Source of the DNA: Mizuhopecten yessoensis
Taxonomy: Eukaryota
Direction of reading: 5' to 3'
Assembly: GCF_002113885.1 (NCBI RefSeq)
Contig: NW_018408567.1
Span: 1,005,537-1,069,536, forward strand
DNA: 64,000 bases
Under the pieces are notes generated by a model. It was not told the origin of the DNA. It saw only the letters and a list, made by a program, of their open reading frames with translations, and searched no databases. Shown here piece by piece: positions 43,897-49,800 of this stretch; the first letter of the stretch is position 1; every line of letters begins with the position of its first letter. The translations under genes and the position numbers were made by a program.

Positions 43897-46800
43897 TCAC
43901 CGACCCTCAACTGAAAGGAACGAAATACAGAAATGAGATCAGTAGGTACATTCTTTTTACATCACATATAAAGTGCAGAAAAGTTTTAACATTTTGTATC
44001 TCAAATCAAAATGGAATTCCCATTACAGCCACATCACAGGCCTAGCTAAATGATCAATCATACATTAAAAGCTGATCGTTCGAAATACGATACAGATGGT
44101 TTGAATATAATGTGCATTTGCAAAGAAGTCCTTTTCCGAACATTATTGGGCTACTAATAGTGATTACATGTATATTGAAGTTTAATCCTACTTACTGTAT
44201 GATGAGATGTCAATCTCATCTGGTAGTTCTGTGATGTTGACCTCAAATCGCTCCTGAACATCATTCAACACCTTGGCATCATTCTCATCAGAGACAAATG
44301 TGATGGCAAGACCTTTGGTACCAAACCTTCCTGCACGTGCCACCTACAAAAATAAGATAAGTTATTCCAAATGTTTTAATATGGTCACCAAACACTATTC
44401 AGTCAAAGAGATCAATTAAGAATTCAAAAAGTTTAAAGAATTCAATTTTAAATTTCTATTTTAAAGTTGATAATTCCCATTCACAGATTTGCAATCATCT
44501 TTTTTTTTTTAAACCGATTACTAAGAAAAAGTGATCTTTCTAGTAAAATGCAAAATTCTTGGAAGGATGTTACGATGTGTTCCATCTTGAAACTTTTGTA
44601 TGAATGTGACTATCTATATTACAAATGTTCCATTTCTTAACGGTCTTTTTGAATGTTTTTGGTGCATTTTCATTCTTTAAATGTTTATCCAAAAAAAGCA
44701 ACCTAAACTCTACACAAAACTTTTGAATTTTTTATTCAAACAGAAAGTAAATTACTTTTCACCAATTTCTTAAGGTCGCAAGAGTTTCCGAGCCAGGGTT
44801 ATTTTGGAGATTATGCATGGTTTTTCGTGTTGCATGACTAAAGTATTAACTTACTCTGTGTAGATATGTGTCAGAATTCTCGGGCATGTCGTAGTTAAAC
44901 ACAATGTTTACTCTCTCAATATCCATTCCTCGTCCAAACAAGTTTGTGGCTACCAGGATTCTTTTCTGGAAATCCTTAAACTGCTGATAACGAGATAATC
45001 TGAAAAGAGCGATAAAAACGATCAATATTCAGTTTCAAACAAATTTAGAAAACAAGACTTGTAGGCTTTCTGGAGAATTAATCTTAAAATACAGATTTAT
45101 GAATGACCTAACTCTATGTGCAATTAAAGAACAGCATCAGGTTTGTTATCTATCAATGGGCATCCTAGGTTGCCAATATACTTTCAAGAAGATACATCAA
45201 ATGAAATATGTGTATCAGACTCTGGAGAGCATTTCAGTCACTGTAAACATTTGAGATATCCCTGCAAGCTTTCTTCAAACATGCAACACTCTCTTAAACA
45301 ATGCTCTGTACAATGTACTAATCATTCCCATACAAGTTTCTGTAGTTGGCAAGTCAAAGCAGACTTCCAATAAGGCGGTCATCTAAGATCTGCTCTGCAG
45401 AAACCAGGCAAACTTGCTTAAAACTGAACTGAAAATAAAGCTTGCCTTTTCTATTGACAAATGCCATATGATTGCCAGATCCTAACTCACCTTTCCTCCT
45501 GTGTCATGGCTCTATGGATGGCGATAGCGGGGAAGTTCTGCTCCACCAACAACTGTGCCAGGGCCATACATCTCTGGACGGACTTTACGAAGATGATCAC
45601 CTGTAAACAAGAAGGTGTCCATTCAATACAGTGTTACACAGGATAATGCTTCTTTGAACAAATTTCACAATGATGATTGCAGTAAAAATAGGAGACACTG
45701 ATGTTACAGTGGGCTATATGTGGCAATGGTTTTTCAAAAACAGAATGACTTGTGTAGCTTTAAGGAAAATTTGGATTCATCTCAGACAAAGGTGGTAATC
45801 GTGTCATCCCCATTATTGTGTAAGAGTGGTGCACGACGTTTGTCATCATAGACCGATATGGATTCTCTGTACATAATTTGAGTTTGATAGTGAACAAGAG
45901 AAAAACCAATGCATGCCGACTTCAACAAGCAGATCAACTCACTTTTTAAATCTAGTCCATTATTCTTTTAATGCCGATATTATAACCAGTAGCTGAAATC
46001 ATTATCCATTACAAATTTTATATCCAATGGACAGACGAATTAAGTTCTTTATACACATAACTTGAATATTCGTTGAGTGCTTTCAAACCAACGATATTAA
46101 GCCAAATTTTGTTTTGAAAAGTTGGTCTCAACTTTAAAATCATGTAGTCCAGCATATATCATTTGAGAAAAGCACAAGTTGCTTTAACATCTCAGACAAA
46201 GGTGGTAATCGTGTCATCCCCATTATTGTGTAAGAGTGGTGCACGACGTTTGTCATCATAGACGGATATTTATTTTCTGTACATTACTTGAGTTTGATAG
46301 TGAACAAGCGGAAAACCAATGCATGCCAACTTCAACAAGCAGATCAACTCACTTTTTAAATCTAGTCCATTATTCATTTAATGCAGATATTATAAACAGT
46401 AGTTGAAATCATTATTTATTAGATTTTATATCCACTGGACAGACAAATTAAGTTCTTTATACACAAAACTTGAATATTCGTTAAGTGCTTTCAAACAAAT
46501 GATATTAAGCCAATTTTTGTTTTGAAAAGTTGGCCTCAACTTAAGAAGCATGTAGTCCAGCATATATCATTTGAGAAAAGCACAAGTTGCTTTAACATCT
46601 CAGACAAAGGTGGTAATCGTGTCATCCCCATTATTGTGTAAGAGTGGTGCACGACGTTTGTCATCATAGACAAGGATCCTTGTTATTTTTGTTGATGGTG
46701 AATAGAGAAAAATCATTTATGATGACCGGAACAAAAAATTTACATGCACTTCTGTATGAAGTCAATTATCTGTCTTAATGGCGACTTATATTTAATCAGT

Positions 46801-49800
46801 AGTTGGAATCTTGTTATGTTCACTTGGGACTAATCTAGCTTTCCTGAAGACAGTCAAAACCCTACCAGGAAATCTGGTGGCTAAAACGGTGCGAGTTTTT
46901 GTCAATCATGACCCACAAAAAAAAACTTGCACCACTACCAATCCTCATAGTTCTAGCCGTATAAAATCACCATTTCAGAGAAACACACGTTGGCTAAATT
47001 TTAGGTTAATAGCAAATATCAAAGGATCATAAGACATGTCAACTGCATCCAGTTTCTGCCATTCTTTTAACCTGAGCATATTGCTAGTAATGAGTTAAAT
47101 CAAGTCCCAAGTTTTAATCTCTTGAACCCTTTCAATCCTAGGTCACTTTATTTGACTCGACCATACATTTATTTGAACGAGTCCATTATGGTCTGCAGTG
47201 GTGAAAGGAGGGTTAATTTAGGTATGGAATACGAGATTGGGAAAACATATGAAATATATAACAAAAATTCATCCACTTAAAAAAAGAAGAAGAAATTCAT
47301 GAGCAAGCTCTTCATGCCTAGATATCTAATTTTTAGTAACTTAAATTTGCACGATTTGAAAATCCTTAAAAATCATCTACTTTTAGTGCTGCAAAGAAGT
47401 TTTTCCCCCACACACATTCAAATCTCAGACAAAGGTGGTAATCGTGTTATCCCCATTACTGTGTAAGAGTGGTGCACGACGTTTGTCATCACTGATGGAT
47501 ATGGATTCTCTGTACATTAATGGATTTAAGCCAACTAATTCATTCTTGATACTCTAAACCTTAATATTCATCAACTGCTCCCAAACCAATGATATATACC
47601 CATCAACTGCTCCCAAACCAATGATATATACCCATCAACTGCTTCCAAACCAATGATATGAAGCCAACTTTTGTTTAGGAAAGTTGAATTTTGAGGGAAA
47701 CAATACAATGTTCCTACATCACTAATCCCAGAAAGTTAGAAATGGTTTTTGCCACACTGATGCGTCGTACATGACGTTTGTTTGTCATCATTGACTCGCA
47801 TAAATAATTGGAGCTGTTTTATACAGTAGGTCCACTTGACAGGAAATGTCTTTCATTCACCAAGATTATTCTAGTTTTGTTAACAGCTGTTTGGCATCAT
47901 TTTAGTATTATTTATTAATAATGGAGCAGGAAAAGGATAAAAACAGTGAAGTCTCAAGTAGTTCAATCATCGGCTTCAGATTATCTTGCGACAACTTAAA
48001 AATCATCAAGTCCAGCATTTACCATTTGAGAAAAGTATGATTTGCTTTAAAATCTCAGACAAAGGTGGTAATCGTGTCATCCCCAGTATTGTGTAAGAGT
48101 GGTGCACGACGTTTGTCATCATAGACGGATATTCATTCTCTGTACATTATTTGAGTTTGATCACTGTGAACAAGAGGAAAACCAATGCATGCCGACTTCA
48201 ACAAGCAGATCAACTCACTTTTTAAATCTAGTCAATTATTTGTTTAATGCAGATATTATAAACAGTAGTTGAAATCATTATTTATTACATATTTTATATC
48301 CACTGGACAGACGAATTAATTTCTTTATACACAAAACTTGAATATTCGTTAAGTGCTTTCAAACCAACGATATTAAGCCAATTTTTGTTTTGAAAAATTG
48401 ACCTCAACTGAAGAAGCATGCATGTAGTCCAGCATATATCATTTGAGAAAAGCACAAGTGGCTTTAAAATCTCAGACAAAGGTGGTAATCGTGTCATCCC
48501 CATTATTGTGTAAGAGTGGTGCACGACGTTTGTCATCATAGACCGATATTTATTCTCTGTACATAATTTGAGTTTGATCACTGTGAACAAGAGTGAACCA
48601 ATGCATGCCGACTTCAACAAGCAGAATTCACTTTTTAAATCTTTTAAATTATTTGTTTAATGCCGATATTATAACCAGTAGTTGAAATCATTATTCATTA
48701 CATATTTTATATCCACTGGACAGACGAATTAAGTTCTTTATACAAAAAAATTGAATATTTGTTAAGTGCTTTCAAACCAACGATATTAAGCCAATTTTTG
48801 TTTTGAAAAGTTGACCTCAACTTAAAAAGCATGTAGTCCAGCATATATCACTTGAGAAAAGCACAAGTTGCTTTAAAATCTCAGACAAAGGTGGTAATCG
48901 TGTCATCCCCATTATTGTGTAAGAGTGGTGCACGACGTTTGTCATCATAGACCGATATTTATTCTCTGTACATTATTTGAGTTTGATCACTGTGAACAAG
49001 AGGAAAACCAATGCATGCCGACTTCAACAAGCAGGTCAACTCACTTTTTAAATCTTTTAAATTATTTGTTAAACGCAGATATTATAAACAGTAACTGAAA
49101 TCATTATCTATAACAGGTTTTTATACTCATTGGGCTGATGACTTTGTTCTTTCTACAGAAAACCTTTGTAATCATCAGCTACTTTCGCACAAATGATATG
49201 AAACCAACTATTGTTTCGAAAAGTTGAATTTTGAGGGAAACACAATATGATATTCCAATATCAGTGATCCGAGAAAGTAAGTAATGGTTATACCAATCAC
49301 CGAGATGTCGTGCATAATGTTCGCATTGATGGGCATGATAATTTACCTGTTCTTCTACAGTTGGTTCTGTTGACATGAAATACTTTTCATTTACCAAGGG
49401 TATCCCCTTTTTGTCAACAATTGATTTGTATCATTTTTAATAGTGTTATTCATGAATAATGGAGCAGGACATGAAAAGCATGAAGTCGATCAAATACGGG
49501 GATTATACCATTTGAGAAAAGCACGAGTTTGCTTTTAAATCTCAGACAAAGGTGGTAATCGTGTCATCCCCATTATTGTGTAAGAGTGGTGCACGACGTT
49601 TGTCATCATAGATTGATATGGACGAGTGCGAGATACCATATGACTAAAGCCAATAAACACTAGTTGGCAATATGTTCTCTACAGGAATATGACCCGGTTT
49701 ACAACAAGGATGTGGACTCATTGATAAATGTTTTGCAAACTGCTTGTTTCAACTCAAAATAAAATTTTAAATGAAACAAAATTTCTATTATAATTTCTGA

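Follow-up and report, generated by a model that had tools for sequence, protein, structure and literature searches.

Eight near-identical box C/D snoRNA genes in one intron of the scallop DDX39/UAP56 gene, predicted to guide methylation of a conserved 18S rRNA site

Eight box C/D snoRNA genes of 73-77 nt are arranged head to tail on the minus strand of the Mizuhopecten yessoensis genome, all of them within one intron of the DDX39/UAP56 gene. They were detected by fuzzy search and by repeat-family search of the window, the 64,000-nt stretch of DNA that was analysed and to which all positions refer. The best explanation is a tandem array of functional genes for a single box C/D snoRNA, which are transcribed as part of the host intron and from which mature RNA is predicted; we consider this reading probable.

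Host intron and organization of the array

Translations of the flanking exons fit DDX39/UAP56 and homologues of the gene are named UAP56/SUB2, which bears out the host named in the original prediction. The joint 45598>50449 (cut +2) was covered by 375 and 399 reads in two raw RNA runs and was also found in spliced contigs of two further runs. No splice joints were seen inside the 4850-nt intron in the RNA runs, which provided approx. 380 spliced reads per run across it. Contigs of the intron itself were present in the two runs that also hold the spliced DDX39 form. The RNA data show that the intron is transcribed over its full length and spliced out as a single unit. The RNA-seq data come from ordinary long-fragment libraries, which show the precursor intron and cannot resolve mature 75-nt RNAs. 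Raw-read depth was 0-3x anywhere in the intron compared to approx. 250x (45492-45600) to 400x (50451-50582) on the flanking exons, and the host is a highly expressed gene.

All eight copies are located on the sense strand of the host, uninterrupted by exons, as in an intronic snoRNA gene cluster. Copy 8, which is transcribed first, is separated from the 5′ splice site by 836 nt. The last copy to be transcribed, copy 1, is the nearest to the 3′ splice site, with its 3′ end 177 nt upstream. The optimum for splicing-dependent box C/D assembly is 65-85 nt from the 3′ splice site, and none of the eight copies is found at this canonical distance. With the end of the intron at 45601, distances of 0.6-4 kb from the 3′ splice site had been correctly assigned to the internal copies. 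A crude box scan of the other DDX39 introns found no snoRNAs.

Table 1. Coordinates of the snoRNA copies, host gene segments and repeat insertion.
Feature	Position	73-nt core	Strand	Remarks
Downstream DDX39 exon	45492..45600		-	exon translation, spliced reads
Host intron, DDX39/UAP56	45601..50450		-	4850 nt, GT..AG on minus strand; contains entire array
snoRNA copy 1	45778..45854	45780-45852	-	consensus core
snoRNA copy 2	46188..46264	46190-46262	-	consensus core
snoRNA copy 3	46596..46672	46598-46670	-	consensus core; upstream spacer strongly diverged
Interspersed SINE-like repeat piece	47140..47208			inserted in long spacer between copies 4 and 3
snoRNA copy 4	47421..47497	47423-47495	-	four changes; both guides intact
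Decayed copy B1	47724..47796		-	keeps C box, ACAAACGUC stretch and terminal stem; guide scrambled; D box is CUGG
snoRNA copy 5	48051..48127	48053-48125	-	one change, A>C in RNA, D′-C′ linker
snoRNA copy 6	48468..48544	48470-48542	-	consensus core
snoRNA copy 7	48877..48953	48879-48951	-	consensus core
Decayed copy B2	49265..49333		-	homologous to B1; C and D boxes lost
snoRNA copy 8	49538..49614	49540-49612	-	consensus core; terminal stem AAUC/GAUU; 25.1 bits to Z221/snoR21b
Upstream DDX39 exon	50451..50582		-	exon translation, spliced reads, homologue match

Each unit is composed of a terminal stem of 3-4 bp, the C box AUGAUGA, an 18-nt spacer, the D′ box CUUA, a 10-nt linker, the C′ box GGAUGA, a second 18-nt spacer and the D box CUGA. 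The UGAUGA motif is present in all copies (AUGAUGA in seven, GUGAUGA in copy 4), and CUGA is found 67 nt apart from it. Three base pairs of the terminal stem (xUC/GAx) form in every copy and a fourth pair in five of the eight. The internal boxes, D′ and C′, show the degeneracy that is common for them, and the C′ box of copy 4 is mutated. The unit thus exhibits the features of a box C/D snoRNA, namely C and D boxes with a stem, internal D′ and C′ boxes and an antisense element of at least 10 bp ending at D′. External flanking stems, which might support assembly independent of splicing, are limited to a weak 5-bp GAGAA/UUCUC pairing in some copies.

At the curated gathering thresholds, Rfam returned no match in the window. 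Below threshold, all eight copies matched Z221/snoR21b with 18-25 bits, and one of them also matched snR40; the best scores were 25.1 bits against a gathering threshold of 44 (RF00300) and 17.3 against 50 (RF01201). The cmscan alignment placed GUCGUGCACCACU-CUUA on GUCAUGCACCACU-CUGA of Z221/snoR21b with guide and D′ box in the same register, supporting the proposal that the D′ guide has the register of SNORD32A. Because the scores are below the gathering threshold, we regard the array RNA as a likely functional counterpart of snR40/SNORD32/Z221-snoR21b, not as a family member recognised by the models.

The 68-nt core (ATGATGA...CTGA; for example 49542-49609) is identical in six of the eight copies, and neither guide is altered in any copy. 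Copy 4 carries UA>AG just 5′ of the C box, A>G in the linker and GGAUGA>GGAUAA in the C′ box; three of these changes fall inside the 68-nt core and one more lies 2 nt upstream. The counts given in the original prediction (eight copies, six identical cores, one with a single change, one with three, none in the guides) were thereby reproduced. The copy-4 variants are present in precursor contigs: RNA contigs from two independent studies reproduced 47179-47489 without base substitutions, and the X2 contig contained one 1-nt insertion behind 47404, outside the copy-4 core.

Predicted targets of the two guides

The D′ guide, formed by the 3′ 13 nt of the first spacer, pairs with positions 1275-1287 of the scallop's own 18S rRNA through ten Watson-Crick and three G-U pairs. 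G1279 occupies the fifth position of this duplex. According to the fifth-nucleotide rule, the guide should direct 2′-O-methylation of G1279, which corresponds to Gm1271 in yeast (snR40), Gm1328 in human and Gm1272 in Arabidopsis (snoR21). Only 3 of 300 shuffled guides reached the best rRNA duplex score of the D′ guide. With one mismatch allowed, the score was reached by 24 of 300 shuffles and was no longer unusual by itself; the assignment therefore leans on the exact homologous site and the register. The earlier choice of 18S Gm1328/yeast Gm1271 as target is supported by the 13-bp pairing, by the position of G1279 and by a table in which the yeast, human and Arabidopsis sites, together with Dictyostelium, are listed as equivalent (PMC8817022). 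Searched as DNA and with two patterns, the entire 988-Mb assembly yielded the D′ guide sequence at these eight places alone, and the DDX39 array appears to be the only source found in the genome for this universally conserved 18S guide. Interpretation of the array as a transposon or satellite was rejected, as the unit is present nowhere else in the genome.

For the D guide, no significant target was found in 18S, ITS, 5.8S, LSU and part of the 5′ ETS. Its best rRNA match, a site in the 5′ ETS, had a score reached by 29 of 300 shuffles, and with one mismatch allowed the best score was reached by 30 of 300. Comparison with the snRNAs U1 and U2 yielded no duplex longer than 8 bp, and a candidate target in human U1 was rejected, being absent from scallop U1. 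Genome-wide, the complement of the D guide 15-mer had one occurrence outside the array, in nondescript AT-rich DNA, which is close to the roughly two estimated for the genome by chance. The large-subunit CGAAAGAUGGU site targeted by the homologue L071 was also rejected: the scallop D guide pairs at 10 of 13 positions, with a 1-nt shift in register. The D guide looks like a decayed relic of a large-subunit guide that some homologues still carry. Gene conversion accounts better than selection on individual copies for the perfect identity of this apparently targetless element.

An exon-peptide search retrieved eight DDX39 loci from other animals, seven of them including the orthologous intron. 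These loci, none from a close relative, match the window in exons alone (73-86% identity). The guide was not found in any of the seven orthologous introns (115-1776 nt), and Rfam at curated thresholds gave no match on these seven loci. Relatives carry the D′ guide one per intron in other hosts, which are EEF2-like, BET-like and NOP56/58-like. The array is therefore a record of both a change of host gene and an amplification specific to its lineage.

Divergence of cores and spacers

Alignment of the four regular units revealed no variable column among the 73 of the core, compared to 45 of 331 in the spacer (Fisher p=1.2e-4). In the immediate flanks, 11 of 76 columns were variable within the upstream 80 nt and 28 of 68 within the downstream 80 nt, which contained another 28 gapped columns; the core of those copies varied at 1 of 73. 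The two long units have diverged by 25.7% over 377 aligned bases, whereas their flanking cores differ at 1/73 and 4/73 (binomial p about 1e-8 and 7e-6). Spacers of regular units differ by 5.7-9.1%. The spacers contain many indels, and a long one has taken up a piece of a SINE-like element. More than 850 candidate copies of this repeat are present in the genome, and in the RNA runs it was covered at very high depth and showed numerous distinct loose ends. Around copies 3, 4 and 8 the flanking sequence is unrelated or strongly diverged, and even there conservation begins and ends only a few bases away from the snoRNA termini. Conservation of the cores beyond that of the spacers is statistically clear. 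The spacer substitutions and indels and the unrelated flanks that had been described were thus all recovered, and in place of equal divergence the cores proved far more conserved, with p from 1e-4 to 1e-8.

Another two copies, B1 and B2, have decayed and diverge as fast as their flanks; the intact copies are therefore actively kept. The decayed copies, the transposon insertion in the spacer, the targetless D guide and the status of the array as sole source were all absent from the earlier reading of this DNA.

That the cores are identical merely because of very recent duplication, with neither selection nor conversion required, has virtually no probability. Six identical cores and some neighbouring units that are more than 90% alike would fit such an origin. 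Spacers of regular and long units that differ to the extent given above, with indels and a transposon, next to cores that differ at 0-1 of 73 positions do not, nor do two fully decayed copies, and the core versus spacer statistics refute recent duplication as the sole cause. It is also highly improbable that each unit is an independent gene with a promoter in its own spacer and only incidentally located in an intron. A block upstream of the core, AAUGUACAGAGAAUAAAUAUC, is common to copies 1, 2, 4, 5, 6 and 7 and might be taken for such an element, but copies 3 and 8 lack it and still have intact cores. Moreover, every copy is on the sense strand of the host, and no pile-up of read starts was observed within the intron.

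A different possibility, which we hold to be unlikely, is that one or a few copies mature, for example the outermost ones reachable by exonucleases, while the internal copies are passengers kept identical through gene conversion. The identity does reach into the unconstrained linker and the D guide without significant target, a pattern of conversion and not of selection alone, and fitness should suffer little from the loss of a single copy out of eight. However, conservation is confined to the snoRNA ends even where the flanks are unrelated, conversion did not rescue B1 and B2, and copy 4 accumulated changes elsewhere yet retained both guides. Quite improbable, too, is a scenario in which the stable RNA is mainly made up of snoRNA-capped intron remnants of the sno-lncRNA type, neighbouring snoRNPs blocking exonucleases so that the spacers survive as long RNAs. 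This is a documented fate of mammalian introns carrying two snoRNAs, which tend towards such capped long RNAs instead of separate snoRNAs (PMC11028025). In the contig runs X1 and X2, the word depth of unique array spacers was approx. 1.7-2 times that of the 5′ flank of the intron (9.6-13.3 versus 5.5-6.4, and 15.7-22.4 versus 7.3-11.5), opposite to a simple co-transcriptional gradient, although contig word depth is a poor measure, inflated by words partly common to several spacers. The depth of the raw-read runs, minimal throughout the intron compared to the exons, may speak against stable remnants but is too low for a decision. The spacers evolve freely, hence have no conserved function.

An array of eight functional genes would have expanded through successive rounds of unequal duplication involving at least two types of unit (approx. 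410 nt and approx. 630-660 nt). Later, the spacers would have drifted (6-26% divergence, indels, transposon insertion) and two copies decayed, while purifying selection acting on the RNA presumably preserved the near-identity of the eight intact cores. Short-tract gene conversion probably helped, given that the linker, although unconstrained, hardly varies either. Once the intron is spliced and debranched, each core would be protected by snoRNP proteins, and the spacers would be removed by endonucleolytic cuts and exonucleolytic trimming. One host transcript could thereby supply several snoRNAs, whatever their distance to the branch point.

Significance and relation to known systems

With the array, a predicted guide RNA can be assigned in a mollusc to an 18S methylation site that is universally conserved. 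Mollusc snoRNAs are essentially undescribed in the literature searched, in which nothing relevant on mollusc snoRNA arrays was found. DDX39/UAP56 is a protein-coding, non-ribosomal host of a single-intron tandem snoRNA array. This array constitutes a natural experiment on the maturation of animal box C/D snoRNAs that lie at a great distance from the branch point with other snoRNPs on either side. Copies 4 and 5 are internal copies naturally tagged by their sequence, so their maturation is directly testable. As the sole source found for a conserved 18S guide, with two tagged internal copies, the DDX39 array is a clean test case.

It is possible, if doubtful, that scallops and perhaps bivalves generally have shifted to making a large part of their snoRNAs from multi-copy tandem arrays in single introns. 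If true, this would need a pathway not described in animals: either endonucleolytic cleavage of intronic polycistrons, freeing internal box C/D snoRNAs that lie kilobases away from the branch point, or the routine making of snoRNP-capped intron remnants.

The scallop RNA resembles snR40, SNORD32A (U32A) and snoR21 (Z221-R21b) in its box C/D architecture, in the antisense UGCACCACU directly before a D-type box and in its predicted target, the homologous G in the 18S GGUGGUGCAUGG stretch. It differs from them in scoring below the Rfam thresholds, in the D′ box CUUA and in being present in eight copies in one intron. In yeast snR40 and human U32A, the second guide targets the large subunit, whereas that of the scallop is not their large-subunit guide and has no significant target. 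The genomic context differs as well: human U32A is hosted by RPL13A and yeast snR40 is an independent gene, in contrast to the location within DDX39 in the scallop.

In the mammalian SNORD115/SNORD116 arrays, every repeat has its own exons and intron. The scallop array displays no internal splice joints, and its guide has a canonical, though predicted, rRNA target. Common to both are tandem repeats of one box C/D snoRNA, and, as in sno-lncRNAs, several snoRNAs per intron could cap remnants (PMC11028025).

The DDX39 array is real and well kept, and its layout is already known from rice and flies. Clusters of snoRNA genes within introns are described for rice and Drosophila (Liang et al. 2002; Huang et al. 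2005; cited by PMC2780460 and PMC3089462), those of the fly being mainly H/ACA according to PMC3089462. As in these clusters, several snoRNA genes lie on the sense strand of a single intron of a protein-coding host, against the rule of one snoRNA per intron. For the scallop array, this layout would likewise imply processing independent of a position near the branch point. In contrast to the mixed snoRNAs of the rice and fly clusters, the mollusc array consists of eight near-identical copies of one box C/D guide.

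Organization and transcription of the array

Fuzzy search and repeat-family detection in the window revealed a 73-nt block present in eight copies. On the minus strand, every copy displays the textbook layout of a box C/D snoRNA: a short terminal stem, C box AUGAUGA, an 18-nt spacer, D′ box CUUA, a 10-nt linker, C′ box GGAUGA, a second 18-nt spacer, D box CUGA and the other half of the stem. The 68-nt core (ATGATGA to CTGA) and outer coordinates of the original prediction were reproduced exactly. A recount of the eight copies agreed with its tally of six identical cores, one core with one change and one with three, and neither guide is altered in any copy. 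Copy 4 carries one further change two bases upstream of the 68-nt core.

Features of the array, its host intron and other elements of the window
Feature	Position	Strand	Description
Host intron	45601-50450	minus	GT..AG, spliced reads
Eight-copy array	45780-49612	minus	73-nt block
Copy 4	47423-47495	minus	68-nt core with three changes: base before C box, linker, C′ box G>A
Copy 5	48053-48125	minus	One change, in linker
Decayed copy B1	47724-47796	minus	C box and stem kept; guide scrambled; D box CUGG
Decayed copy B2	49265-49333	minus	Both boxes lost
SINE-like fragment	47140-47208		Over 850 candidate genomic copies, 84-92% identity
SNORD10-like matches	4706-8466	minus	Seven sub-threshold Rfam matches, 24-28 bits (threshold 37)
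snoU85-like match	16514-16659	plus	Weak H/ACA match, 20.5 bits (threshold 41)

Directly 3′ of the snoRNA, approximately 5-25 nt downstream on the minus strand, a small hairpin (AAAGCA-ACUUG-UGCUUU; e.g. 48855-48872) follows cores 2, 3, 6, 7 and 8. Copy 8 retains it although its further flank is unrelated, while the hairpin is weakened in copy 5 and missing after copy 1. The hairpin may serve in processing or protection, or may simply belong to the duplicated unit. Elsewhere in the same 64-kb window, the SNORD10-like matches are spaced by about 480-950 bp, most by about 524, which points to a second tandem snoRNA array.

Minus-strand translations yielded exons of a DDX39/UAP56 helicase, and homologues of the adjacent exon bear the source names UAP56/SUB2, supporting DDX39 as the host. 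Four RNA runs (two of raw RNA-seq reads, two of contigs) were mapped over positions 45480-50600. A single joint skipping 4850 nt was observed (375 and 399 reads in the two raw runs). No further joint was detected inside the intron in any of the four runs, which rules out a succession of small exons and introns like that of SNORD116. All eight snoRNA genes share this one intron on the sense strand of the host, with 836 nt between the 5′ splice site and the start of copy 8 and 177 nt between the end of copy 1 and the 3′ splice site.

Intron depth in the raw-read runs was 0-3x, whereas the exons on either side reached roughly 250x and 400x. Contigs of the other two runs, in which the spliced form is present too, span the intron throughout, and unique array junctions, including variant-bearing copy 4, were reproduced by contigs from two independent studies. 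These matches support the array assembly independently and demonstrate that the copies are transcribed as precursor; the libraries used are blind to any mature 75-nt RNA. At position 45526 in a DDX39 exon, a plus-strand A>G difference was found in about 16-24% of reads of both raw runs. As it corresponds to U>C on the minus-strand mRNA, it is not A-to-I editing and most likely represents an allele.

Guides and predicted target

At curated Rfam thresholds nothing was found. In a permissive Rfam scan, 8/8 copies matched plant Z221/snoR21b with 18-25 bits, below the threshold of 44, and one copy also matched yeast snR40. In the permissive alignment, the register of antisense element and D′ box is shared (GUCGUGCACCACU-CUUA on GUCAUGCACCACU-CUGA). 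Guide targets were scanned against the genome's own rDNA, in which N-masked stretches were left unfilled. The best rRNA duplex of the D′ guide comprises 13 bp (10 Watson-Crick, 3 G-U) at 18S 1275-1287 and sets 18S G1279 at the fifth position. Among 300 shuffled guides, only 3 scored as well; under looser one-mismatch scoring 24/300 shuffles equaled the D′ guide, so that the score alone is not unusual. G1279 is equivalent to the tabulated site yeast Gm1271 (snR40), human Gm1328, Arabidopsis Gm1272 (snoR21) and Dictyostelium Gm1266 (PMC8817022), in line with the predicted SNORD32A-like D′ register and with Gm1328/Gm1271 as target. When the complete 988-Mb assembly was screened with one DNA query and two patterns, the guide was located only in the eight array copies. 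Therefore, if G1279 is methylated in the scallop, as in every tabulated organism (PMC8817022), its guide must come from the array.

The D guide (CACGAUUACCACCUUUGU-CUGA) had no significant target in 18S, ITS, 5.8S, LSU or the sampled 5′ ETS, nor in U1 or U2. The complement of its 15-mer occurs once elsewhere in the genome, where roughly two occurrences were estimated by chance. Among homologues on metagenome contigs the D half of the RNA is labile. One of them (L071) has a clean guide directed at the large-subunit CGAAAGAUGGU site, with which the scallop D guide pairs at only 10/13 positions and with a one-base register shift. By this comparison, the scallop D guide reads as the relic of a decayed guide. 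That it is identical in 8/8 copies, with a linker that is almost as uniform, points to gene conversion in addition to selection.

Core conservation and turnover of copies

In the four complete regular units, 0/73 core columns varied compared to 45/331 spacer columns (p=1.2e-4), with a pairwise spacer divergence of 5.7-9.1%. Within 80-nt flanks, 11/76 columns were variable upstream and 28/68 downstream, plus 28 gapped columns downstream, whereas only 1/73 columns varied in the core of the copies compared. The two long spacers (copy 8 to 7 and copy 5 to 4) are homologous to each other, and their 377 aligned bases show 25.7% divergence, against differences of 1/73 and 4/73 in the adjoining cores (p about 1e-8 and 7e-6). 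Core conservation exceeds chance, and the anticipated excess over the spacers was found in regular and long units alike. Conservation stops within a few bases of the snoRNA ends even beside the flanks of copies 3, 4 and 8, which are unrelated as originally described. One of these flanks is explained by a piece of an interspersed SINE-like repeat in the spacer (825 nt) that separates copy 4 from copy 3. The word depth of this fragment in the RNA runs reached about 70,000, and the sequences adjoining it were many and different.

Each long spacer contains one decayed copy of the snoRNA (B1 and B2). Since the divergence between B1 and B2 is about that of their flanks, they appear to evolve as unconstrained copies would. 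Polymorphic sites were present inside the decayed copies (47763 and 49308) and in none of the intact cores. The occurrence of decayed beside eight intact copies argues for birth-and-death evolution of the array, in which at least ten copies would have been made and eight kept.

Proposed processing and comparison with other snoRNA genes

We propose that snoRNP proteins assemble on each core, and that the excised and debranched intron would be cut between units and then trimmed to the protected cores. Several guides would thereby be obtained per DDX39 transcript, irrespective of their distance to the branch point. Alternatively, the intron may give rise to snoRNA-capped long RNAs, a known fate of mammalian multi-snoRNA introns (PMC11028025). 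Consistent with such RNAs, unique in-array spacers (46642-47208, 47614-48071 and 49178-49566) displayed a contig word depth about two times that of the 5′ flank of the intron (49583-50478) in two RNA contig runs, although word depth is a weak measure. A co-transcriptional gradient would run the other way, and the excess could reflect stabilized array RNA.

DDX39 loci of other animals were retrieved exon by exon, resulting in eight loci, seven of them with the orthologous intron. Outside the exons (73-86% identity) none of the eight aligns to the window, which excludes a close relative among them, and no such snoRNA was found in the seven orthologous introns (115-1776 nt). A metagenome scan for the C box, this guide and the D′ box matched more than 120 eukaryotic contigs; as the pattern required the guide, its conservation among the matches is by construction and not evidence. 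Human-gut contigs L058 and L104 were set aside, and none of the other matched contigs contained DDX39 exons. The nearest RNAs (contigs L052, L088 and L129) share the same 17-nt guide and CUUA box and are distributed over two introns of an EEF2-like gene, L052 with two copies. Copies of this EEF2-hosted set vary in the 4-6 nt immediately preceding the D box but not in the 18S guide. Other homologues reside in separate introns of a BET-bromodomain-like gene (L053, L149) or in a NOP56/58-like gene (L100). Homologues placed one per intron in varied hosts show that the guide is ancient, that the host gene shifts between lineages and that a single copy per intron is the norm, the eight copies in one intron being a lineage-specific amplification.

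No paper on mollusc snoRNA arrays was found in the literature searched. With eight snoRNAs in one intron, the scallop array departs from the animal rule of one snoRNA per intron (PMC11028025). The DDX39 array adds a sound example, distinguished by a clear conserved predicted target and a non-ribosomal host, to a known kind of system and does not define a new one.
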